This document shows, piece by piece, positions 2,378-25,400 of a DNA stretch of 42,807 nucleotides. The DNA comes from Octopus bimaculoides (lineage: Eukaryota). The notes under the pieces were generated by a model. It made no database searches, was not told where the DNA came from, and was given only the letters and a program-made list of their open reading frames with translations. Position numbers and translations under genes: made by a program. How positions within the stretch are numbered: the first letter of the stretch is position 1; each line of letters begins with the position of its first letter. The stretch is taken from NCBI RefSeq assembly GCF_001194135.2, contig NC_068991.1:292338-335144 (forward strand). The letters are read 5' to 3'.

Positions 2378-2700
2378 CATCATTTAATGTCTGTTGTCCA
2401 TGCTGGGATGGGTTGGACAGTTTGACCAGAGCTGGTAAGCTGATGGGTTGCACCAGACTCTAGTCTGATTTGACATGGTTTCTACAGCTGGATGCCAACC
2501 ACTCCGAGAGTGTAATGGGTGCTTTCTATATGCCAGTTGCATGACACGACTGATTTCATTTGTCTTGATGGGTCTTCCTCTCAAACATGGCATATTGCCA
2601 AAGGTCTTGGTCATTTGTCATTGCGTCCATGAGGCCCAACGCTTGAAAGGTGCCTCGTATGTGTCATCAGCATGCTTGCTAGTTAACAACACTGGCACCA
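2378..2700 (-). mobile_element. Same repeat family, inverted copy b
   Basis: Reverse complement of the family core, with tail catcatttaatgtc at the left end. Confidence 0.75.
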
Positions 2701-2784
2701 GACACATTGCCTCAGAAGGTCCTGCTTATGTGCCAGTTGTATGCTATTGGCACTAGCCATAACTATGATTTCACTTGGCTTGAC

Positions 2785-2867
<83 letters not shown>

Positions 2868-2869
<2 letters not shown>

Positions 2870-3085
2870 CGTGCCAGTGGCATGTAAAAAGCACTATCCG
2901 AATGACTGGCTCCCATGCCGGTGGCACGTAAAAAGCACCCACTACACCCTGAGTGGTTGGCGTTAGGAAGGGCATCCAGCTGTAGAAACATTGCCAGATC
3001 AGATTGGAGCCTGGTTTTCCAGACCTCGGACAAACTGTCCAACTTGTGCCAGTATGGAAAACAGACGTCAAACGATGATGATAAT
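2868..3085 (+). mobile_element. Same repeat family, copy c
   Basis: gtgccggtggcacgtaaaaagcaccc..ggcgttaggaagggcatccagctgtagaaac..gacgtcaaacgatgatgat; follows (CT)n(AT)n at 2787-2867. Confidence 0.8.
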
Positions 3086-3614
3086 AAAAATTAATATAAA
3101 CAGCTAAGTGTTTATAACAGAAAAATTCATTCGACACTAAGGGTGTCAACACACGTAAATTGTTAGGAATAAGAGTTTAAATATTTTTAATGCTGTGTCT
3201 CTTCCATAGATCTCTTCAGTGAGGACTGCTTGAACAGCACCTACAGACACACACATATATATAAGAGAGAGATGAATGTCTTTCCCTTAGCAGTTCTGTA
3301 AGGGTGTATGTTTAAATACTAATTTAATTGATATGTGATATTTTTAGTTGCTATTTGTTTTAATACTATATACATGTAGTGTGGCTTGAAAATTGGTTTA
3401 GGATTCCTTAAATATTCTCCATAATTTCAATTATTGTTTTCATTTATTAATTTGTTACTTAGTAAGGAAATAACTGTCTAGAAAAATGTGTGTCCATAAG
3501 AGTGGGAGAGCATGATAAATATTTTTACAAGCAGTTTGCTATTAAATCAGTTGTGGATGAAAAACTTATGACATTGAACTCAAAATAACTCACAGCAGCC
3601 TCAAATTATGTAGT

Positions 3615-4911: not shown

Positions 4912-6145
4912 GGGTTGGCAAGCAAGTAATTTGTTTTTTTTGCAAATAGATAAAGTTACGATTTTGTTCCTTTTGACATTTGATAGCCATTACCTTTAGC
5001 TTACTTTAGAAGCAAATTGTGTGTAAATTTGTTTGCAGCTGTTAGTTCAGTGTCAATTTTAACATGGAGTGCAAAAAGGAACATTTTTGCCATATTTTGC
5101 TTTTTTCTTTCCCATAAAGGCAAGAAAGCTGCTGACGTTCACAAAGAGATATGTGGAGTTTATGGTGTTGATTGCTTGACAGAATACACATGTCAGAAAT
5201 GGTTTGAAAAATTCTGTTCTGGAGATTGTTTGCTCAAAGATGACCAACATTCTGGTTGACCTATTGAAGATGATGATGATGACTGAATTAAAGCCATAAT
5301 TGAATTTGATTGTCATATAACTGTGCGAGAGATTGCAGAGAGGTTCAATGTATCACACACAACAATTGAAAATCACTTAAAATGTCTTGGACTCATTAAG
5401 AAGCTCGATATTTGGATTCCACAGGAATTGAAAGAGATTCACTTAACACAACGAATCAATATTTGCAATATACATCAAATGCAATGAAATTGACCTTTTT
5501 TTTTAAACGAATCATCACTGGTGATGAAAAATGGATTGTCTACAATAACACAAACGAAAATGATGATGGTCCAAGCGTAATGAACGAGCACAAACCACGT
5601 CAAAAGCTGAATTGCATCAATAAAAGGTCATGCTGTCAATTTGGTGGGATTGAAAAGGTTTTTGTGTATTTTGAGCTGCTTCCAAGGAACAAAACCATTC
5701 AGATATTTATTGTCAATAACTCCTGAAACTGGAGGAAGCAATAAAAAACCATCGGCAAGAATTGTTCCACCATCACAACACTAAGACCACATATGTCTTT
5801 GCTAACTCGTGGAGAATTACTGGAGCTTGGTTGAGAAGTGATGTCATCCACCGTATAGAACTGATCTTGCACCATCAGATTACCATTTATTTCAAAGTTT
5901 GCAAAGTTCTTTGGATGGTAAAATATTTCAATAATGATGATGACTGGAAATCGAACTTGTTTCAGTTTTTGGCTGAAAAGGACCAGAAGTTCTCTGAGCA
6001 GAGAAGCATGAAGTTGCGAGAAAGATGGCAAAAGATCATTGAAAACAATGGAAAATATGTAATTGATTAAAGTTCATTCCTTCTTTGAAAAAAAAAAAAA
6101 ATGATTTCACACTAAAAATCCGAAATTACTTTCTTGCCAACCTTA
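4910..6145 (+). mobile_element. Full-length inactivated mariner (Hsmar1/cecropia-like TIRs), about 1.24 kb
   Basis: TIRs ttgggttggcaagcaagtaatttg / cgaaattactttcttgccaacctta; broken transposase with HTH region (KEICGVYG..TCQKWFEKFCSGD), LDIWIPQEL (WVPHEL motif) and RIITGDEKWIVY; many stops and frameshifts. Confidence 0.92.
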
Positions 6146-6837: not shown

Positions 6838-7364
6838 NNNNNNNNNNNNNNNNNNNNNNNNNNNNNNNNNNNNNNNNNNNNNNNNNNNNNNNNNNNNNNN
6901 NNNNNNNNNNNNNNNNNNNNNNNNNNNNNNNNNNNNNNNNNNNNNNNNNNNNNNNNNNNNNNNNNNNNNNNNNNNNNNNNNNNNNNNNNNNNNNNNNNNN
7001 NNNNNNNNNNNNNNNNNNNNNNNNNNNNNNNNNNNNNNNNNNNNNNNNNNNNNNNNNNNNNNNNNNNNNNNNNNNNNNNNNNNNNNNNNNNNNNNNNNNN
7101 NNNNNNNNNNNNNNNNNNNNNNNNNNNNNNNNNNNNNNNNNNNNNNNNNNNNNNNNNNNNNNNNNNNNNNNNNNNNNNNNNNNNNNNNNNNNNNNNNNNN
7201 NNNNNNNNNNNNNNNNNNNNNNNNNNNNNNNNNNNNNNNNNNNNNNNNNNNNNNNNNNNNNNNNNNNNNNNNNNNNNNNNNNNNNNNNNNNNNNNNNNNN
7301 NNNNNNNNNNNNNNNNNNNNNNNNNNNNNNNNNNNNNNNNNNNNNNNNNNNNNNNNNNNNNNNN
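6838..7364. other. Assembly gap (527 N)
   Basis: Run of N flanked on the right by TA/CA microsatellite. Confidence 1.
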
Positions 7365-8368: not shown

Positions 8369-8468
8369 NNNNNNNNNNNNNNNNNNNNNNNNNNNNNNNN
8401 NNNNNNNNNNNNNNNNNNNNNNNNNNNNNNNNNNNNNNNNNNNNNNNNNNNNNNNNNNNNNNNNNNNN
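8369..8468. other. Assembly gap (100 N)
   Basis: Preceded by a SINE tail (cat)n cgtttaacgtccgc and followed by (TACG)n. Confidence 1.
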
Positions 8469-8705: not shown

Positions 8706-8899
8706 TTACCTGACAATTTTCCACTTGATCTTTGGTTGTAAAAATATTGATGTGGTTCCCTTTTTCTTGTCTAGCCAAGTTTTACAGGGGAATATTGATT
8801 TCTCCCGTGTGGTTTTATTGATTATTTCAATGCGATCCAAGAACCAACCGGAACCAAAACCAGAACTATCATGTTCAATGAAAAGACTTCGCAACTTCC
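8706..8899 (-). CDS. LOXHD1: LOXHD1 exon 23, probable terminal coding exon
   Basis: ttttgcag|GG...TAA; [63 protein letters not shown]. Confidence 0.9.
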
Positions 8900-11800
8900 C
8901 TGCAAAATGGAAATTTAGTTTTGTTTTAAAGACATGGAGATAGAAAATATAAAGTAGTTATCTTAATTACAACATCCTTTATTAATTCCAATAAAGATGA
9001 AGTCTAAACCTTTCATTCCCCCCTACCTCCTCCTTTTCATGTTACAGCCATCAAAGACCTTTAAAAAGACAGACTTTGCATGGGTTTCTTTTAGTAGACG
9101 CAACGGATGACAGTCTTTAGTTGTCTCTTTATGCTGGATTGTAAAATAACTGACAAACTTGGAGGACCAACAGGAGATGTGGAAGATGTGAAAGAAGACC
9201 ATATTCCCGTGAAGCAATGGTTGGTTTAGGTGGTGATATGAAAGCCTGACAGACAGGAAGAGTAGTGAGGTCTTATGGGATTGAAGAGTAAGTGAAGGTT
9301 TACCATTGGAGGGTGTCTGTTTACAGAAGATGAGTGTTTAATGGCAGATAATAAAGGATAGATGGAGAGGAAAAGATGACCAGACGGGAAATATTGGAGG
9401 AGCTGAAGGTGAGTCAAAACATGGGGAAGTGGTCATGTGCAGTGTTTGTGTACCTAGATTTTTGTCATCAGAGACAAAAGATTCAATACTTTTAGACACC
9501 CATCCGCACACATAAATCTGTCTCCAGTTTATTTCTCCAAAGGGAATTAAGATGGCATTGCTTTCAGGACTGACCAGTTTCTGTTCTACACACACACACA
9601 CACACACACATTTGTAATCACCTACACGTTTGCACATACCACTAAATTGAAGGAAATAATGTATTCCTCCTTCACTGACATCAGATTTTATGATGACTTA
9701 GAGACATCAGATCTTTGACTATGATGAAAACAATCTGTTGTCTCTAACGTGTCAAAATTTGATAAAACTGTCCAGAGGAGGGATGGAAAGAATTTTTTTT
9801 TTTAATAGCTCATTCTTGAATTGCCCCCTTTCTCTTGGTATACTAAACGTTGTGTAAACAAGGTATAAATTCAACACAACCCTATGCATGCCCCACACGT
9901 TGGGAATCCTGGACCTAAGTTATAAAACATCATTTCCTTTGAAATAGTCACCGGTCCCAGCATTGCTGCCACTTTTGCAATCAGGCCTGGAATTGTTTTG
10001 TGTGAGTTGAGGATGTTCCGCAATTTGCTCAGAATCTCGACAATGGCAACCTGTGAGCTGCATTTTCGTCTTTGGGAAGAGATGGAAGTCTGCAGGTGCA
10101 GAAGTGATAATACCATGCTGTTTTTGGCAAGGAACTGCCGAGTGAGGAGGAGAGCTTGGATGACAGGGTGCAATTGTCATTGTAAAGAATTTAGTTCTTC
10201 ATGGTGCACACACATCTTGTCACTTTGCCAAATGTCCTCCTTTAAATGCCTCAAAACATTGCAGTAAAGCTCTCAATTGATGGTCTGGTTANNNNNNNNN
10301 NNNNNNNNNNNNNNNNNNNNNNNNNNNNNNNNNNNNNNNNNNNNNNNNNNNNNNNNNNNNNNNNNNNNNNNNNNNCGAGCATGCTCTTGATGGAGCTGCG
10401 GCTCTGTCATGCTTTCTTTGGGTCATGAAGATGAAAGCCTCCTCTTCCATTTTTGATGACTGCTGTTTTGTCTCAGGGCCATGCATACAGACCCCCAACT
10501 CTTGCCACCAGTAATGGTCCTTGGCATGAAGGATGGGTCATCGACATGGTGGTCAGCAGGCAGGGGACAAACTTGGCAGAGACCTGTCTCTGTAGCAGAC
10601 TTCCCAGATTTTACGTTGGCTCCTTATTCCAACTTCCTGTCCATGACAAAATCGCATCCAGTGATGGATGTTAAGATGAGGTTGCTGGGCCATACATTGA
10701 GGAAATATGGAAGCAGAAAGAAATTGGAGATGCTGGAGGAGGTAGTGAGGACAAGATCTGTAAGGGTGGGGGTGATAGAGACGCTAAGACAACGGTGAAG
10801 ACTTATGGGACACCGCTTTAGCACAGAGAATGGTCTTAAATTAACATGGTATCTCTTGGAGAAGTAAGGAAATATTTAAGGAACACTCAGAAAAGAATGC
10901 CAAATAAATATGGTTGCATTTACAAACTTTATATTTCAGAGAAAAAGAAATTAATGAATTTGCTACTCAAATAAATTGATAAGATTAATTCTTTTTAATG
11001 TTCCTTCTCCTGGTTCTTAAAAATGACAGATTTTTCATGGTAATGTTCACATTTAAATGAGCACTAATTTGGTGTTTGGAATATGATAATTGTTTCACTA
11101 AATCACTCCAAATTCATAAGTATGAAAATAATTTAAAATACATAAGGCTGTGTATTTGATTAGAAATATACAAATTCATATATTGGTTGGCTTCCTGGTA
11201 AAATCCATAGCATTTGCATGAAATGTGTTAATGAAAATAATATTTAACACAATTATAAAAAAAACTAGGAATAGACTTGATATGGTTCATGGTAAGATAT
11301 TGTAGCGTGGACGTTTTGTTTTAGCTGTGAGCCTCTCAGAAAATATATTTCTGAAAATTTACCTAATTAATGTAAATATGAGCCCCATTCATCAATTTCT
11401 CATTAAAAATATTTAATAGAAGATAAATTGTTATTTTGGAGATAATATTTGTTAAAATATTTGTCATGGTTTTGTTGTTTATAAAATAGAAATATTTTTA
11501 AACTAAGAAAGAAATGAATAAAATCAATGGCATTGAAAATATTTCTCTATTTCTAGAGGAATTGGTATGAAGAGATAAAGGTGAGGTGTTTAGAAAATTC
11601 GAATCCAGTCCTGACAATTGTACTCACCCAATTCAAGACATTTGATAAGAAACGTGTCTTTCTGATTTCTCTCAAATAAATCTCGAAATCTTTGTTTCAA
11701 TGCTTGCCTGCCTGTTTCTCCATCTTCTCCAAATATATTGATGTAGACATTGGCATCTGTTCCTGCATGTTTTACATCTCCAGTGTATACTTGTATTTCA

Positions 11801-14800
11801 TATGTGACCATCCTTCCTGAAATATTGGCAAATAAACTATTAGCTGTCATTACTGGCAGACACAGTTGACCTTGTCAACATCTTGCTGAATCCATGCCCC
11901 AGTCCACCTAGCTGTAAATAGGCACCGGTGACTTAAATGTAAATGTGCAATTGACTCTTGCGTTCCTCTGGGGACATGTATCCCTTAACTACATCAGGTG
12001 ACATCATCACATGTATCATATTTATAGAGAGATAGATTTAGATACACATGCATCCTCCATGTTATAGTTTCTCAGGTTACAGGATTTTATGGTCTGAAAT
12101 TTTGCCCTTTATTGAAAGTTGAGTAAACTTTAATAATTTATTAAAAATGACACATTTTTCATTGCCAAAAGGCCACTTCCTCAAAGACTCCTTAATTAGA
12201 AAAACTATAATCACAATATATACATTGTATGTGTTTGTCCTTTCCCTCGTCTATATATAAATACTTGTAATTAGAGGTGCACTTAGCAGCATTCAATGAA
12301 ATCTAATTATGTATAGTTGTATCTCCTATGCTTATGATGTATATTCAGCTACAGAAACACAACACACTTCACAAATTGAATTCTCCTTATTGTAGACACT
12401 ATGGATGCAAAGACACAAACTGGCCAGGAATTGTCTGCTGCAGGATGTATGTCTCTGCTACATAGAATGAGTTGGTTATAGCGACTAAGCATTGGTTGCT
12501 GAATAAATTAGAGGTAAGACGCTTATGGACCAGTGACCATAATTCCTGGCTTAGTGGTGGATTTCTTAAGACAATTTGTGCAGCATGTCTTTCCATTTGC
12601 ATGCCAGAAATTGCCATCTGCTGATGGCTAAAAACATGTAGACTTTTATGCTGCTGGTGACAAAATATTTTGGGAGAGAAAAAGGAAGAGTTATCTCCCA
12701 TCGATTGGTGAAGTGAGGCTGTGTGTGTGCAGAGCATTGCTCTCTGGACATGACCTTGTTGCCAAAATGAATGTGAGAGTAGCATCCCAAAATTTTCTCA
12801 GATGCCCAGGGTTTGTCTATTGGTAGGAGATAGTTTCTGTTACCTAGGCAACCTAATTAGCAGTGGAGAGGGATGTTCTGAGATTATAATTGCTAGAGTA
12901 AGAATAGGACGGTGAAAGTCAAGGAGTTATTACGTCTGGGTCACAAAAAGGCAGATTATATGATGCTGGTACATATAAACAGTAAACTTGCATGGTAACG
13001 AGACCTGGACGCTCAATGCAGAGGGAAAGACTAGAAAAGAACGAAGCTGACAAGTTCTGATGGATATGCAACAGAGAGTATGGTCATGTGGTGTGTATGG
13101 CTGAGTATAGCTGCATAAACAAGGTCCCAATAGTTTAAGGTGAATGGAATTTGTAGAAGAAGGAGAGAAAGTATAGAGAGGGCTAAGGACTGAGATGGTT
13201 AGTATTTTGCTGCACTCAATTTTTAAAGATGCTTAAACATTAGCATGGCTTATATTAAAAACAAAACAAGAACACTGTGTTATGCAATACATCTTACCAT
13301 ACGCTCTATGAAAATAACTTGTGATGTGGCTGCTATTTCTTGTTGTTCAACCAAGAACTATGTACTTTAGTAAAACACTTACTTCTTTTCTTCTTTGTTA
13401 GTTGTTTGTCTTGCATTGTCTCCACCAAACAGAGTCTCACTGAATCATTTTTGGATATCTTTTCAGTTACTTTCACCCAATCATTACATTGAAATATAAA
13501 TCTGATGGGCAGCAAACAGAAAAAATATTGAATGTTAAACAAGTTTAGAAATTCTTTTTGTTCTTGATAAACGAAGTGTTTAAACCCTTCCGCATAAAGT
13601 TTAGTGAGATTTCTGCATCAGACTGAATTAATTTTATCACACACACACACACATACACATATATATATATATACACGTATATATATACAATCTTATATAT
13701 GCAGAGGCAACAGATGAGGTTGAGAGAACCTCAGTATAGAACCTACACTTAGTAACATCGATCAAATGATTTGAACTTGCACTCTGATATTCTTACCAAG
13801 GACCAAGTCATCAAGGTTAAAGAGTGGCCATAGGGGTGGTAAGGGGACCAGCTAGTTAGTGTTGCAGATCATTCGGTCATTTTGGGAACAAACTCTATGG
13901 AACCAGCAGCACACCATGAAACCCATCCGAATGACAACGTTTCCATTGAAGTTGCCAAACATGAAGAATAAGGCTGCTGCCATTTGTAACTGAGGCAGTT
14001 GACAAAAAGGCTTTTGTAAATTTGATAATTTTGTTTGGCAGTTTCAGTTGAGGAGCATAAGCAGACATAATAGACGCTGTACTACTTTACAAAACTAGTC
14101 TCAGCATCCCATTGCACCTTCTGGCGATCTGGATCACTTTATCCAAACATTTATCAGCTAAAAGTATGCCCACATCAGCTATCCAATCCCCATTGCCTTC
14201 TCAGAAGATTTTATACGTATGTTCTTTGCCTGTGAGGAACTTGGTTGAGGCTCCCCTCCAACTCACTTCTTGAAGACAAGGCACATTTACACACCTTCTG
14301 GCTTCTACTAATCTCACCAGATGTCTGTAAAGGTTCGCATGGATCAGCATGGAAAGCAGATGTTAAACGACGCCGATGATGTTTGTTAGTAGGCATATCA
14401 TGTCAGTTTGTTCTAAAATTTAATTTACCATTATGTAATCGTTTCACTCTTGTTGCCTCGACCAGAAAAGGGTGCGATAAGCAACTTCTGTTTATACAAA
14501 GATAAATAATAACTGATGAATTAATTATCTGACTGGTAAGTATCCTTAACTCACATTTCTGATATGGGTGGTGTTTACAATATAAAAGGCATAGCTAACA
14601 CCCTTTGCATTTTCAGGGCAGAGACAGGGTATTGATGAAGGGGGAAGAAATAAAGAATATGATCTGGTTCACATTAAAGAAGCAGCAGACAAGACTCCAT
14701 TTGAATTCCATTAAAGATGATGCAAGTTGTGAAAGCTAAATATTACACCATCTTTAATGGAATTCAAATTAATTGAAAACAAAATCAATATTTGACATTA

Positions 14801-17800
14801 ATTAATGAAGTGTTGTATAGAATATTGAAACAATATTGTGTACATGTTGGCTGTAGCTTCATCAATCACTGTAATTTGATCGCACAGCCAGAAGTTAGAG
14901 ACAGAAGGTCTATGTGCTGATGATGATGATGACGTTCCAGTATGGAATATAGCTCCTAAGTAACAGCTCTTTATCTCACCAACAGGTGGACAAGTGAAAG
15001 TAAATCCATCGGTCTTTCCTCTGAAATAATAATAATAATAATAACAATAATAATAATAATAATAATAATGGTTTCAAATTTTAGCCAGCAATTTCAGGGA
15101 AGGGATAAATTGATATTACTCACCCCAGATGAAAGTAAAGTTGACCTTGCTGGAATTTGAACTCAGAACATAATTTATCGACCCCCAAAAGATGAAAAGC
15201 AAAGCCAACGTTGGCAGAATTGGAACTCAGAATGTAAAATAAGAAGAAATACTGCTAAGCATTTTGCCGAATGTGTTAACGATTCTTCCAGCTCACCACC
15301 TTACCAATAATAATAATAATCTTTTCTACTAAAGGCACAAGGCCTGAAATTTGGGGTAGGGGTGTATTCGATGACACTGACCCCAGAAGGATGCAAGGCA
15401 AAGTTGACCTTGGCAGAATTTGAACTCAGAACGTAAAGATGAAATGCTGCTAAGCATTTTGCCTGGCGTGCTAACGATTCTGCCAGCTCATCACCTTAAT
15501 AATAATAATCCTTTTTACAAAAGGCACAAGGCTTGAAATTTTGGGGAAGGGGACTGGTCAATAACACTGACCGCAGTGTTTCACTGGTACTTAATTTATT
15601 GACCCCCAAAAGGATGAAAGGCATAGTCCACCTTGGCAGAATTTGAATTCAGAATGTAAAGACGGATGAAATGCCATGAAGCATTTTGCTTGGTGTGTTA
15701 ATGGTTTCAGCCAGCTCATTACCGCAATAATAATAATGACAATAATAGAGAGGTTGTATAGTGTGGTCAGTAACAGCTTGCATGATTTGTGGGAGATATT
15801 GATACTATTTTTGTAGGTCAAGCTACCACATAGAAGCTTGACTTAGTGGTTCAATGTCAAAAATACTTTCTGCAAATATCAACAACCAAATTATTTGTTG
15901 CAATGAAACTTGGATAAAATCTTACTTTTGGAAAAATTTTCCCTCAGAATTTTTGATTTTCTCAATGATATAAGTTGTTTGTTTGTCTCCTTCCAAAATA
16001 AACCAAACATCATCAGAAATACTGGCATCTTTCTGGTCTGATGTTGTGATGAGAATTCGGTAATCTGGAAGATAAAACAAGAAGATCTGATGTAATGCAT
16101 TTGTTGGCCTCAATATTTGACTGTTAATATGAGGGAACAATTGCTTGGTTGATGTTAGGAAGAGTGTCCAGTCATAGAAACCATGCCAAAACAGACATGG
16201 AACCCAGGCAGCACTCCAGCTGGTCACCTCCTGCCAAACTGTCCAACCCATGCCAGCATGGAAAATGTTTTCCCTCCACACATCAAACACACCAGTCTAA
16301 AATCCTATTCAAATGCTATGGGCACTGACTATCTTCCATGGATTAAACAATAACCCCTAATTTTGATCCAGGCCATAAACTTAATGTCTGTCGTAATGCT
16401 ACATGGCCATATATTTTGGTGCCAGGCTTGAGTAAATTACATTCCTCACCAACCCCAGTATTTCACTGATGTTATTTTATCAACACTTGAAGCCAGGTTA
16501 TAAAGCTGTAATATGTCCATATTTATGTGTGTCTTTAATCAGATCCAATTTTCCTTATCATTGTATAGTTGCTAAGACAACAAAATCTATGAAGTATACA
16601 TACCTTGTTTCTTTTTATAGCTATGGTTTGCTGTAGCATGGTCTGTATCATATCCAATAGGGATACACTTCTGTTGGAAATTGAGCAATTCTTGGTGTGT
16701 ATACTTCCTGTAGCTCCTGGCTTCTCCAATGAAAATATACGATATTACAGCACAGATATCAAATCAAGACATTTAATGGAGTGAATGTAGCTACATATGA
16801 CAGGAATTGAACCAGTGATTTGTGGCTCGCAACATCAGCAATGAATGATGTTATGGATGAAGACTTAGAGAGAAGTAAAGATAAACAGAACTGTTGTTGT
16901 TTTGCTAACCATTTTGTAGAGTATACTGAGGGCTTTTTATGTGGCACCAACACCTGTGAGGTAATCAAGTAACTCACTGGACAAGACCCTTTAAATGAAG
17001 AGGGGGGGGGCTCACTGAGTGTGGCCAATCATGACTATCGGTTGAAAGGAAAGATGGAGGAAGTAGGATTGGGTCGGGGAGGAGGTAAGAGGTTAGGGTG
17101 TTCAAGGGATGATGTCAGGTTTGTAAGGGGTAAATAGTGGGAGACAAATGGGAGAAGGCTTCATTGACAAAATGAAGTGGGGTACCAAGGAAAAAGGGTA
17201 GTGAAGAGGGAGTTTTGGGGGAAAATAAGGGGTGGGACTGAAAATGTATGAGGCAAAGGAAGTGAGGAGGAGGAATGGAATGCAGTTCTGTTCTCTGAAT
17301 GAATGGTGTCGTAGTTAGAAGAGTGAGGATGGAGAGTGTGTTAGGAGGAGATTCATGAGGAACAGATTGAATGTAGAAGCATAGGTGGAATGCTTTTAGG
17401 GCCTCATTTTTACTTATTTATACTCAGAACCACATTAATAGCTTAGGAGTGAAATTTAGGATTTCTTGGTTTTCTGTGAATCTATTTTGATAAAACTTTT
17501 CCCACCTGATTTCCATGTTATGGCAACACCGTTGTTGTGTTTCCATTATTCTGTGAAACGTCCTTTCTTTTTCATTTCAGATTCTTCAGTTTTTGGGTGA
17601 ACCACACTAATGGCATCTCTCTGCTCTAAGAACAATGGGACATGGAAAAGGCCCTTAACGATGAAGAAAGGTTTTCTGTTAAACATATACTCAATGTATG
17701 CTTCATATATATATCATTACCCTTCATTTCCTGAAAAAAAAATGTCTCGATGGGTTATCTTCATTCAAAAGCTATTAGTGCAGTTCACCCCAGAAGAATC

Positions 17801-20800
17801 TGAAATAAAAAAAAACGAAAGGACATTACACATAAGAATGGTGTTGCCATAGTGTGCAAAGAAGCTGGGAAAAGTTTTATCAAAATCGATTCACAGAAAA
17901 CTGAGAAATCCTAAATTTCACTCCTAAGCTATTAAATGTGGTTGTGGGTGTATATTCATAACCACATATGTATTTATCCCATTCTACATGTAACTGTATA
18001 CATGATTGAAGTTATATACACTTCCGTCTAAATTGCTGACCTTGTGCCAAAATTTGAAGCCAATATCCTAAACTCTTTACAGGCAAACACTTACGTAACT
18101 TGTGTAAAAGTTGGTCTGTTGTAGAATCTTCTTTGTGGTTTCTGTGCTGAGTCTCTGCTGTTGATTCTTGAATGATTGATGTCTCGACAAGCAGCATCCT
18201 TTCTGTTAATTGGTCATCTTCGTCCTCTGCCAACCATTGGTTGCATGGAAATACAAAAGTCTTGGAACTCTACAGCACAATAAAACAATGGATATAGCAA
18301 AGTACAATAAATATGTTTTGATGGGAATAAAATAAATGTTTTTTTTTACCTTTCCAGAAGAAATTAACTTTCGAACTTCAACTTTAGCAAGATACCAGCC
18401 AGCTCCAAAACCAGAGCCATCATGACCAATGCGAATTTTTTCAACATCATCTCCAATATTTTCCATCTTATAAAATAAGAAAAGATAATTTCATGGTTGA
18501 ACACTAAAAACCATTTACATTTCTCATATCAAATATATAAACCCCAACATTTATTCAAAATGATATGTTTGAAAAAAAAGAACAGAGATTTATAAGATGC
18601 ACGGCAACTGAGAGTTTGTGCAAGACTAGTTGCTAGGAGAAGGTGCAGTCAGACGGGAGGTGATGGAGTGAATGAGAGGAGGAGGAGGAGGAGATGAATA
18701 GGTTGAAGAGAAGTTAGACAGGAGGTGTATTTAATGAAAAGAAGTGCAAAATAACAGGTTTGTTAATGTATGATGTGAGGATGAGAGGAGAGATTTCAGT
18801 GAGAATCAAAACGTTTAGTGGGGGTAGGGGGTGGAGGTGGAAAGTTTGGATTCTGAGCTTCACTGAACCTGGTTGTGCCTTCAAGTTAGATGCAAGTGTA
18901 TAGAAGAGAAGTAGTATGGAGAATTGGATAGAATGAGTGGATTTTATATTCATCCGGAAAACAAGACAGACAGAAGCTTGTTAATGCTAATGTCCCTGCA
19001 AAGAATGTATTATTTGGTTGACACACAGGGCAACAAAGAACCATAACATAAATGACAAGTGGGAATAGTGACTTGTCCAGTCAGCCAAGCAGAGAAGAGA
19101 GAGAGATGTGCAATAGCTATAACCATGAACTACTGCAAGGGCAAAGGAGATGTTCTAGAAAGAAGCAACTGTAAATTGACCAGGTTATGAAAAGAGCAGA
19201 GTTTTAGCACAACTGACTGGGAAGAAAATCACTTTCAATGCCATGCACTTTGCTTTATGCCAAAACGGAATACCAATGGTTTCCGCTTTCAAATGAGATA
19301 GCTACACAAGAAATCTCTAGACTACATCTCATATTTGTTGAAATGGAGAAGTTTGTAACAAGGTATCATGATGTGATCGAGTGGTGAGTAAGAAACTAGG
19401 TGATGCGAGTCATGCACAGAGATGCTGTCAGAAAGGTGAAGGATTTAGTGTGCAGGTAAGAGTTTATTGAAATTTGCTTCACCACTCTCTCCAGTTCATT
19501 ATAATTCTTCAGGCCTTAACAAAAGAGATTAACACTGTGATAATCCACGGGAACTCCTGTATATCAACAGCTTAATTCTCACTCCTGAATCTGTAACAAA
19601 AAAAAAAAAACTGAAAGAAATTCCAAGCATGGCCTCAAAAGGCCTCACTGCAAACCCAGCAGTAAACAGAAAAGAAGACCGAACTCTTGTGTCTCTTCAA
19701 TAACTGGAACAAAAGTTGGTGTGTGTCGGTGATTCTGCACTTCTTGGAAAACAAGATTGATAAGTAAATATAAGTTTGAGTTAATCCAGAATTTTGGATT
19801 ATCTGGCCCTAAGAGGTTGATATTAACCAGTACTAGAATATATTGGTGTCTTGGAGATATTGTATGTTAAGATGAGATAAATGGAAATAGAAAATTTGGT
19901 ATCTCTACAGACACTTACCTCTAAAATAAATTTATCTACAGCATTTCTTCTGAATTTCTGTTTTCTCTCATTTTTCGTGAGACACAGAGGCTTTTGTTGT
20001 GTTCTCTTGTCTTTACTGTAGAGGGCAATGTAGACATTGGCATCTGTGGAAGCCTGAGCAACATCTCCAGTGTATGTGGTTATTTCATATGGGATATCTG
20101 ATGAGGGACAGTAAAGACAGGGGAAAGAATCAGAATTATTTCAACATTTCTGAATGAAATTAGCAGGAATCGTGTCACGAATAAAAAACAGTGAAACCGG
20201 GGGAAATAAAAAAGATTTCTCTTTTTTAAATATTCGCACCTGTCGATACATTTGTAGGTGTGGTATAGAAACAAATACAGGTGTTGTATAGGTGCAAGGA
20301 TGGCTATGTGGTTAAGAAGTTTGATTCCCAGCCACATGGTTTTGGGTTCAGTCCTGCTGCCTAGCACCTTGGGCAAGTGACTTCTATGTCCTCAGGCTGA
20401 CCAAAGCTTCATGAATAGAGTTGGTTGATTGAAACTGAAAGTCTGTCACACACACACACACACACACACACAGGTATAGCCCAGCCTTCCTACACAACAC
20501 ATAGACTCTAACTAAATTTACTCTATGACTTGAGTGATCTCAATCATTGAAGTGAACCTAGCTAAGAGTTGAATTCAGACAATCAAGAAATCTAACTAAA
20601 GACCACAAAGGTAATTTGCATTACGCTCCACAGGTTCTAATCTTCCACAACCAATGACGAAAGAGCCTCTATGTGGTTACTTCACCTGCTAGAAATAGTA
20701 TCAAATGTCTCTCAAATCACACTCAACATCTTAAATAAGGAAAAAAATTCATTAGTTAATGTAGTCCAAGACAGTCCTGAAAAAGTGGAGAGGTCAAAAC

Positions 20801-22413: not shown

Positions 22414-25400
22414 ATCATTCATGTACCATTTCAATGGGCTGAACACACACACATGCATGAATGCAAACACACACACACACACACGTGTATGTGCAAACAT
22501 TCAACATACGTACTTACAAGCAGACAAACCCACAGTGAAATATTAAGACACAAAAAAAAGAAAAAAAACTCAATGTTATTGACCTGTGTTGGCAGAGCTG
22601 AGGATTTGATTGCTTACCAGAGTTATCCAGGTGTCCATACAGAATCACATAGACGTTTGCATCAGTCCCAGCTCCCCATCTATCAGCAGTGTGCACCTTC
22701 ACATGGTAGGTGGTGGTCAGAGCTGTAACACATTCAAAGAGACTCACAGCAATTTATGAAGATTAATATGAGAATTTCTGTAGATTTGGAATGTATGGAG
22801 GGTAGGCATGAAAGGGAGAGGGAGGAATGATGAGTTTAGGGTAGAATGGTTACCGAGAAATAGTATGGTAGACATGTACTATAGTAGCTACTCAGAAATA
22901 TAGTACAGCTGTTGGTACTGAAGGGTATAATTTGAAAACTGTAGTAAGTAATTGCATTGTAGCTACTGCAAGCTATAGAGATCACAACGGGGCTTGTGAT
23001 GGCAAACTGGATAAAACAACCAAGCAACCAGATTCGATCTCTTTCCACTGCAAACGCTCGCACAGCACACTTCACTGGCTGGGCCTCTAGGCTAATCCGC
23101 TTGTTGTATCTCTTGAGGCAATGGCCCACGTAACGGAAAACGACAAATTCACACTGCTTGAGATGGCTACAGAGAGCAACACACTTTCACCCTTGTGCAC
23201 AGAATAAATAAAACCGTTTGAGAACCTGCGTTTTGCTTGATACTTCTTTACTCGACTGCTGGAACCTTAAGCAACATGAAGAACAAGAAATTAATGGGAG
23301 AAGGTGATATTCAGCCGATATTGAGAACTTTGCCTCCCATTATATAGTTAGGACTGTTTGCTATATATTTATACCATTCAACAAACATTAACCTAGAAAT
23401 ACCGGAAAGATTAAATTATTTTCATGTTAAACCTTTTACTTCCAGACCAAGTTGTGTTTTTAAAGATTCTGGCTCATTCTTCAATAATTTCTTCTTCAGA
23501 GATGCCTTCACTGGAACCAGTTCCCTCACAATTTGTCCGTCACCTTCATTGGTTGCTAACCACCATTGACAAGGGAAAAATGTTCTGCAAAAAAAAAAAC
23601 CAAAAAAAAAATCCAGTAAACAAAGCAACCCCAAAAACTAAAAATTTTGGAAACTTTGACAAAAATCTCTGAGCCAAGAATAACAGAAATAATATATACA
23701 GTAAAACTGTGTGTCAGGGTGCATGTGTGTGTGAGTGTATATATGTACTTGTCTACTGTGTGGATGTAAAGGTATGTATGCATATATANNNNNNNNNNNN
23801 NNNNNNNNNNNNNNNNNNNNNNNNNNNNNNNNNNNNNNNNNNNNNNNNNNNNNNNNNNNNNNNNNNNNNNNNNNNNNNNNNNNNNNNNNNNNNNNNNNNN
23901 NNNNNNNNNNNNNNNNNNNNNNNNNNNNNNNNNNNNNNNNNNNNNNNNNNNNNNNNNNNNNNNNNNNNNNNNNNNNNNNNNNNNNNNNNNNNNNNNNNNN
24001 NNNNNNNNNNNNNNNNNNNNNNNNNNNNNNNNNNNNNNNNNNNNNNNNNNNNNNNNNNNNNNNNNNNNNNNNNNNNNNNNNNNNNNNNNNNNNNNNNNNN
24101 NNNNNNNNNNNNNNNNNNNNNNNNNNNNNNNNNNNNNNNNNNNNNNNNNNNNNNNNNNNNNNNNNNNNNNNNNNNNNNNNNNNNNNNNNNNNNNNNNNNN
24201 NNNNNNNNNNNNNNNNNNNNNNNNNNNNNNNNNNNNNNNNNNNNNNNNNNNNNNNNNNNNNNNNNNNNNNNNNNNNNNNNNNNNNNNNNNNNNNNNNNNN
24301 NNNNNNNNNNNNNNNNNNNNNNNNNNNNNNNNNNNNNNNNNNNNNNNNNNNNNNNNNNNNNNNNNNNNNNNNNNNNNNNNNNNNNNNNNNNNNNNNNNNN
24401 NNNNNNNNNNNNNNNNNNNNNNNNNNNNNNNNNNNNNNNNNNNNNNNNNNNNNNNNNNNNNNNNNNNNNNNNNNNNNNNNNNNNNNNNNNNNNNNNNNNN
24501 NNNNNNNNNNNNNNNNNNNNNNNNNNNNNNNNNNNNNNNNNNNNNNNNNNNNNNNNNNNNNNNNNNNNNNNNNNNNNNNNNNNNNNNNNNNNNNNNNNNN
24601 NNNNNNNNNNNNNNNNNNNNNNNNNNNNNNATAAAAGACACCATTTCAAGTGTGGCCGTTTTCGTGCGGGTGACACGTAAAAGCACCCACTACACACTCT
24701 GAGTGGTTGGCGTTAGGAAGGGCATCCAGCTGTAGAAACTCTGCCAAATTAGACTGGAGCCTGGTGTTGCCATCCGGTTTCACCAGTCCTCAGTCAAATC
24801 GTCCAACCCATGCTAGCATGGAAAGCGGACGTTAAACGATGATGATGATGATGATGATGTATGTACTTGAGTTTGTGTGTATGTATGTATGTATGCATGT
24901 GCATAAGTATGTTATTTCAGTATGTCTGTGCATGCATGTATATGAATGTATATGTGTATTTATGTATGTATCTGTATACATTTTGTCACTTCATCTGTTG
25001 CTCACCGCACACTCTTGCAAACTTCTGTCCCCACCCCTTCCCTTCTAGCCCCTTTTATGTTGAGATTATGTCCCAACAACTCATCATCACCAGCTTCTTC
25101 TCTCCTTTTCCAATTGCAGTAGACAAGTATCTCCGCTACAGCAAGACACCTCTTCCTATCCCTTCATCATACCCTAACCTCTTGTCAAAGTCCCCTCCCC
25201 TCGATCAAAGTGTCCTGTCTTGCAAGCCACTTGCGAACCTCACTCGTGCTGGTGACTTGGACAAGCAACCATCATGTGTTGTAAAGTGGTTGTCATTAGG
25301 AAGGGCATCCAACACTTGAAACCATGCCAAAGCAGCTGTCTGACTTGCTGGATCCTGTGAAACTGTCCAAACCATGCCAGCATAGATGCTAACTGATGAT

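Follow-up and report, generated by a model that had tools for sequence, protein, structure and literature searches.

It is likely that the octopods lost a contiguous block of four PLAT repeats, equivalent to PLAT10-13 of the mouse protein, from LOXHD1 through one in-frame deletion, and that the shortened protein is still functional. LOXHD1 consists of tandem PLAT domains only, the PLAT domain being a beta-sandwich that binds lipid or protein. The stretch analyzed here (the window) is 42,807 nucleotides of Octopus bimaculoides contig NC_068991.1 in RefSeq assembly GCF_001194135.2, positions 292,338 to 335,144. It is AT-rich animal DNA and carries on its minus strand the 3' two-thirds of the LOXHD1 gene, the only one annotated in this species, as a chain of PLAT exons running from about 42044 down to 8706. 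The lost block includes PLAT10, the site of samba I1342N. A preliminary description of the window had proposed that four repeats are missing between exons 18 and 19, and this is borne out by repeat-by-repeat orthology and by three further octopod assemblies.

The exon model was built from homologue alignments and splice sites, and it has AG/GT at every exon boundary. The donor at 14844 and exon 21 (13501-13383) were taken from the O. sinensis RefSeq model, and the acceptor at 11816 was settled after trying nearby AG sites. The model of 23 exons translates to exactly 1176 aa, the length given in the preliminary description; it omits a small coding exon, here called the linker exon. With the linker exon included, the spliced product is identical from residue 112 on to XP_052827371.1, the O. 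bimaculoides RefSeq LOXHD1 isoform X1 of 1326 aa.

The mammalian repeats were numbered r01-r16 by chaining overlapping mammalian sequences, and the same 16 are present in a full-length mammalian protein of 2270 aa. The count in the literature is 15 PLAT repeats, from the mouse cochlear cDNA. Published primers tie the two systems together. The PLAT10 primer and the samba genotyping primer (PMC8051682) encode KSENRTNK and WCADWYV, both in r11, and the PLAT15 primer (PMC8051682) encodes GWLVEKV, which lines up with the r16 motif GWLV[DE][KR]V. Therefore, r10 is PLAT9, and r11-r14 are PLAT10-13. By residue arithmetic, r07 would be the repeat left uncounted in the mouse cDNA numbering.

A PLAT Hidden Markov Model (HMM) finds eight complete PLAT units, w1-w8, and one partial unit in the window. 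The complete units were scored against class HMMs built from non-cephalopod repeats only. With the score of the next class in brackets, w1 is best on r05 at 163 (147), w2 on r06 at 163 (150), w4 on r08 at 182 (155), w5 on r09 at 181 (140), w6 on r10 at 180 (119), w7 on r15 at 92 (56) and w8 on r16 at 162 (136); w3 is ambiguous between r02 at 110 and r07 at 101. None of the eight units scores best on r11-r14. The window repeats are orthologues of mouse PLAT4-9, 14 and 15, plus one repeat absent from the mouse cochlear cDNA. They are collinear with the LOXHD1 orthologue group and share its composition of tandem PLAT domains only. The full complement of repeats, 15 in the mouse cDNA or 16 by the HMM count, is not there, the gene being without r11-r14 in each of four octopod assemblies. 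Against Pfam PLAT (PF01477), w6, w7 and w8 score 63.9, 53.8 and 79.6 bits, all above the gathering cut-off of 23. The divergent w7 covers profile positions 1-109 of 117, and its counterpart, Aplysia r15, scores 43.7 bits. The motifs that the preliminary description had given for the human protein (TQQKYLC..EKIRIGH..RRL, VWLILEG and LKQKMRNLFER..EHDSSG..WLDKKRG) all occur in mammalian LOXHD1, as checked in a deer and another mammalian sequence (P0057, P0194) rather than the human entry. Exactly four repeats separate the TQQKYLC and VWLILEG repeats in mammalian LOXHD1, as it had also stated.

The interval at issue, 16065-18094, lies between the last exon of the PLAT9 orthologue, which ends at 18095, and the first exon of the PLAT14 orthologue, which starts at 16064. 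On the minus strand, w6 (r10, mouse PLAT9) is encoded by exon 16 (19919-20097, with TQQKPLC; 78 bits on the r10 profile), exon 17 (18350-18466; 62 bits on the same profile) and exon 18 (18095-18269). The last of these continues into a linker of the r10/r11 type and ends in phase 1, with its donor as in the last r10 exon of Aplysia. Then w7 (r15, mouse PLAT14) starts with exon 19 (15926-16064), the acceptor of which has the position and phase of that of the first r15 exon of Aplysia. The exon 18 donor GT is at 18094-18093, and the exon 19 acceptor AG is at 16066-16065; both are in phase 1, and a direct junction is in frame. There is no run of N within the interval. With 120 LOXHD1 homologues as queries (E<=10), TblastN detected no PLAT homologue in it, the sole match inside being the O. 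vulgaris model on the linker exon. Hmmsearch with the --max option and eight PLAT profiles, seven repeat-specific and one general, gave no match to any six-frame fragment of the interval. The absence of a gap and of PLAT motifs between exons 18 and 19, as first described, therefore holds, but the 117-nt coding exon had been missed. The RefSeq transcript models have no extra PLAT exons between exons 18 and 19 and pass from r10 to r15 via the linker exon only.

The interval is thus not one intron but two introns and a small coding exon. The linker exon is a cassette at 16720-16604 on the minus strand, 117 nt encoding 39 aa in phase 1/1, with AG/GT boundaries and an intact frame. It is preceded by an intron at 16721-18094 that lacks PLAT-coding potential and followed by one at 16065-16603. 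An acceptor at 16723 had been put forward as an alternative; it is 3 nt off the start of a coding exon at 16720. The linker exon is in all five RefSeq isoforms read (three from O. bimaculoides, two from O. sinensis) and also in the O. vulgaris and Argonauta models, and both its ends are conserved between Octopus and Argonauta. It is octopod-specific and is not a PLAT domain; a Pfam search of the exon gave no match. The protein accordingly runs from the PLAT9 orthologue through about 29 residues of native linker and the 39 residues of the octopod-specific exon to the PLAT14 and PLAT15 orthologues, and the coding linker exon partly fills the gap left by the missing repeats.

The interval is transcribed and includes one short coding exon, and one might suppose that its intron sequence still contains the four repeats, diverged past recognition or used only in rare transcripts. 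Against this, the interval is 2.0 kb, while four repeats need roughly 1.6-1.7 kb for coding alone and span about 12 kb in Aplysia. No fragment scores on any PLAT profile with all filters off. The linker exon was also considered as a relic of the lost block, but its alignments to the r10-r15 interval of Aplysia, Batillaria, Mya, sea urchin and a mammal are no better than those of shuffled sequence, so there is no detectable relic of the deleted block in it. We regard decay in place as very improbable. The intron between exon 18 and the linker exon also holds an element of about 540 bp (17416-17955) with 106-nt inverted arms, 88% complementary and 289 nt apart. It looks like a miniature inverted-repeat transposable element or a foldback element, and part of it is present at the orthologous O. 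vulgaris site.

In O. vulgaris (L001), O. sinensis (L003) and Argonauta hians (L002), the orthologous locus has the same junction. The last r10 exon and the first r15 exon are 2.7-6.6 kb apart in these three, and an unfiltered profile search found no PLAT remnant between those exons in any of them or in the window. The window and the O. vulgaris locus are collinear, with insertions accounting for the size difference. Transcript models join r10, the linker exon and r15 in O. bimaculoides, O. sinensis and Argonauta. These loci bear on the possibility that the O. bimaculoides assembly is missing the four repeats through collapse or omission. Similar tandem repeats are prone to collapse, and the window has four runs of N elsewhere (6838-7364, 8369-8468, 10292-10375 and 23789-24630). 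However, there is no gap in 16065-18094, and the same junction recurs in the three other assemblies, in whole loci without runs of N, one of them from a different octopod family. Collapse is also implausible because r10 and r15 are only distantly alike. An assembly artefact thus has very little probability; misassembly had been raised in the preliminary description, and no extra PLAT exons are found at the locus in any of the four assemblies.

Whether the short array reflects loss in octopods or gain elsewhere is decided by the outgroups. The run r10-r11-r12-r13-r14-r15-r16 is found in that order in Aplysia, Batillaria, Mya, Strongylocentrotus, Seison, rotifers, several flatworms and mammals. 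Ciona has the same run of repeats, although those in the middle cannot be assigned one by one. A fragment from Littorina has r13-r16, and a model from the cnidarian Paramuricea carries repeats as far as r13, where the model ends. Since the outgroups retain r11-r14, the short octopod array is derived. The alternative is that the octopus state is original and that internal duplication added four repeats in vertebrates. Tandem duplication does enlarge PLAT arrays in many lineages, and there are many unrelated multi-PLAT proteins among the matches. Nevertheless, each of r11-r14 can be recognized, in order, in gastropods, a bivalve, sea urchin, Seison, rotifers, flatworms and mammals, their assignment in Ciona is partial, and the cnidarian fragment reaches r13. 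The chance that the short array is ancestral is accordingly close to nil. Lineage-specific loss and expansion elsewhere had both been offered at the outset; the first stands and the second falls, the outgroups carrying the four repeats in the same order. Because the short array is common to Octopus and Argonauta, the loss is older than their split. Farther out, the choanoflagellate Hartaetosiga gracilis (P0332) and the sponge Oscarella pearsei (P0458) have long LOXHD1-like PLAT arrays, and that of H. gracilis ends with repeats scoring best, in order, on r13, r14 and r15, a hint that the repeat order is in part older than animals.

The closest mollusc model compared that has r10-r16 complete is Aplysia californica LOXHD1 (XP_012940880.1), and it suggests how the deletion may have occurred. 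Its r10, r15 and r16 are clear orthologues of the octopus units, and the introns at the end of r10 and within r15 agree in position and phase. The introns after its last r10 exon and before its first r15 exon are in phase 1, at the positions of the octopus exon 18 donor and exon 19 acceptor. The difference is that Aplysia keeps r11-r14, in about 12 kb of gene between these two introns, which are fused in octopus. The PLAT units in the window (387, 387, 498, 435, 396, 471 and 435 nt) are whole codons, and every first exon starts in phase 1. Since the units are whole codons between phase-1 introns, removal of a whole unit keeps the frame. We propose one genomic deletion in an octopod ancestor, before the split of Octopus and Argonauta, with breakpoints in two phase-1 introns, the one that follows the last PLAT9 exon and the one that precedes the first PLAT14 exon. 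One breakpoint in each of the two introns would produce exactly the present in-frame junction, and the linker exon would sit in the fused intron.

The shortened gene appears to be constrained. In comparison to O. sinensis, the ratio of nonsynonymous to synonymous substitution rates (dN/dS) is 0.04-0.28 in every unit, including 0.21 for r15 and 0.28 for r16, all from small counts. The linker exon has a dN/dS of 0.20, resting on one amino-acid difference. As purifying selection acts on all the remaining units and on the linker exon, we infer that the shortened protein is still functional.

The window gene could instead be a shortened duplicate, with a full-length LOXHD1 carrying PLAT10-13 elsewhere in the octopod genomes. 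The bearing of the protein searches on this depends on their reach. The word-index searches listed matches up to an apparent limit of about 1.75 times the query length, and the representative library merges relatives above 50% identity. Within that reach, cephalopods were represented only by clusters of this gene, from Octopus (three species), Argonauta and Sepia, and the search that listed all matches of up to 695 aa gave no cephalopod fragment; EukProt identifiers from O. bimaculoides show that its proteome is in the collection. RefSeq names the O. bimaculoides gene LOXHD1, with no '-like', and the repeats flanking the gap are collinear orthologues under purifying selection. We therefore consider a truncated paralogue improbable. 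No decapodiform LOXHD1 protein besides the Sepia pharaonis model, which ends inside r10, turned up in the protein searches. Ten short, high-identity matches taken as candidates for squid or cuttlefish were from birds, a snake, a sponge or unnamed metagenome proteins.

Several points count against the reading of a single functional deletion. The loss is shown at the LOXHD1 locus, so a second full-length copy, or a separate gene with r11-r14, is possible elsewhere in the genome. An octopus protein longer than 1923 aa, or one clustered at 50% under another representative, would be outside the reach of the protein searches. Over r05-r09, Sepia (P0002) is no nearer to Octopus (53%) than to Aplysia (56%), and its slight lean towards Aplysia would suit a truncated paralogue. 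Over the same repeats, Octopus is 50% identical to Aplysia and 48% to sea urchin, and Sepia is 56% and 50%, respectively. The lower identities of Octopus suggest a faster octopod lineage; an old paralogy would fit the same pattern. The Argonauta transcript model was possibly projected from the Octopus models and so may not be independent, while the Argonauta genome sequence is. Score alone leaves w3 between r02 and r07; w3 precedes a charged linker, as r07 does. Finally, we infer the single deletion from conserved intron phases rather than having observed it.

The rest of the gene model is as follows, all on the minus strand. Exons 1-15 (20916-42044) encode the last exon of the r04 (mouse PLAT4) orthologue and then the five complete units w1-w5, which are r05, r06, r07 with its charged linker, r08 and r09. 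The largest run of N in the window (23789-24630, 842 nt) is in the intron between exons 11 and 12 of w4; as w4 is complete on either side of it, no coding sequence seems to be lost there. Unit w7 continues with exon 20 (14844-15020) and ends with exon 21 (13383-13501). Unit w8 (r16, mouse PLAT15) begins with exon 22 (11628-11816) and ends with the last coding exon, exon 23 (8706-8899), which contains EHDSSG...WLDKKKG...KIKWKIVR and stops at TAA.

Exon 20 is variable in several ways. It is 177 nt long, and both O. bimaculoides isoform X2 and the X2 model of Argonauta skip it in frame, which would delete the middle of the PLAT14-like domain. If its weak donor at 14844 is not used, its frame runs 15 codons farther to a TAA (14798-14800) that is conserved in O. 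vulgaris. Its serine-rich tract has an in-frame 12-nt indel between species. A segment in the window at 13898-14362 was considered as a fragment of a long interspersed nuclear element; it has no Pfam match, and we do not claim it. Downstream of the gene, at 4987-5484 on the plus strand, is a stop-interrupted remnant of a mariner/Mos1-type transposase (Pfam HTH_48, 52.5 bits).

LOXHD1 extends upstream beyond the window, and an r04 exon is just beyond the window equivalent in O. vulgaris. The r04 orthologue in octopus (9027-9299 of the O. vulgaris locus; residues 31-110 of P0453) no longer has the usual G-x-x-AGT[DN]A motif (WFLWVSTSETTRARPDSTISVVVYG), which Sepia retains (WFVFVYTGSKKNAGTNANVS). 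This, too, points to relaxed or changed constraint on the octopod protein. The octopod models (P0340, P0341 and P0453) all begin at MWLA[AT]DE, in the middle of a PLAT domain. At 2635-3126 of the Argonauta locus, the open frame runs on upstream through an entire PLAT domain, so the annotated octopod starts probably miss the true N-terminus. The repeats at the N-terminal end of the octopod protein are presumably unannotated or placed in another gene. Many non-mammalian LOXHD1 proteins have one more PLAT repeat ahead of r01, among them those of sea urchin (P0193) and lamprey (P0201, P0330) and several invertebrate fragments, and mammals themselves may have lost an N-terminal repeat.

The octopod protein resembles mammalian LOXHD1, the product of the DFNB77 deafness gene (mouse cDNA FJ750876, 15 PLAT repeats), in being made of PLAT domains only, in the collinearity of PLAT4-9, 14 and 15, in the charged linker after the seventh repeat by the r count and in the divergent penultimate repeat with VW.ILEG. 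Identity to mammalian LOXHD1 over r05-r09 is about 42%. The octopus protein differs in being without PLAT10-13, and thus without the repeat of samba I1342N and the PLAT11/12 antibody epitopes, and in having a 39-aa linker exon with no mammalian counterpart. The same r10-linker-r15-r16 architecture as in the window product is seen in O. sinensis XP_036363166.1 and Argonauta hians GAB1599835.1. The O. bimaculoides sequence is already in RefSeq and the gene models are public; our literature search found no paper mentioning LOXHD1 together with cephalopods, and the short form is apparently undescribed.

A partial parallel exists in the mouse. The Loxhd1 T1308X transcript lacks exons 28-32, which removes PLAT10 in frame, and there is a defect in mechanotransduction (PMC8051682). 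The two cases share the modular phase structure of the exons, by which whole PLAT exon sets can be removed in frame. They differ in that T1308X is an induced splicing product minus one repeat, whereas in octopods the loss is genomic and fixed and takes in four repeats. PLAT10 is the only repeat with genetics at the level of the repeat. Mouse hair cells need it past the first postnatal week, and PLAT10 mutations abolish most of the transduction current after P7 without disturbing the structure of the bundle (PMC8051682). Complete loss of LOXHD1 delocalizes TMC1 from the tips of the stereocilia, the whole protein being what keeps TMC1 channels there (PMC11387651). Expression of LOXHD1 is known from mouse hair cells, planarian mechanosensory neurons and jellyfish statocyst hair cells.

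The preliminary description had suggested that a shorter array could alter the reach of this elongated protein, and such an effect would be conceivable. It is possible, and we offer it only tentatively, that octopod mechanosensory cells run on a natural 'mini-LOXHD1' in which a flexible linker of about 70 residues takes the place of PLAT10-13. If so, PLAT10-13 would serve a partner or a geometry that octopods no longer use, or its role could be bypassed, and the octopod protein would be a template for shortened LOXHD1 constructs. To our knowledge, the individual roles of the many PLAT repeats of LOXHD1 are unassigned. Because the repeat order is kept in all the other animal groups sampled, a clean, fixed, in-frame loss of PLAT10-13 amounts to a natural deletion experiment. 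The octopod junction gives the exact breakpoints for making the same deletion in mouse or zebrafish, and the loss shows which part of the array at least one animal group has been able to lose.

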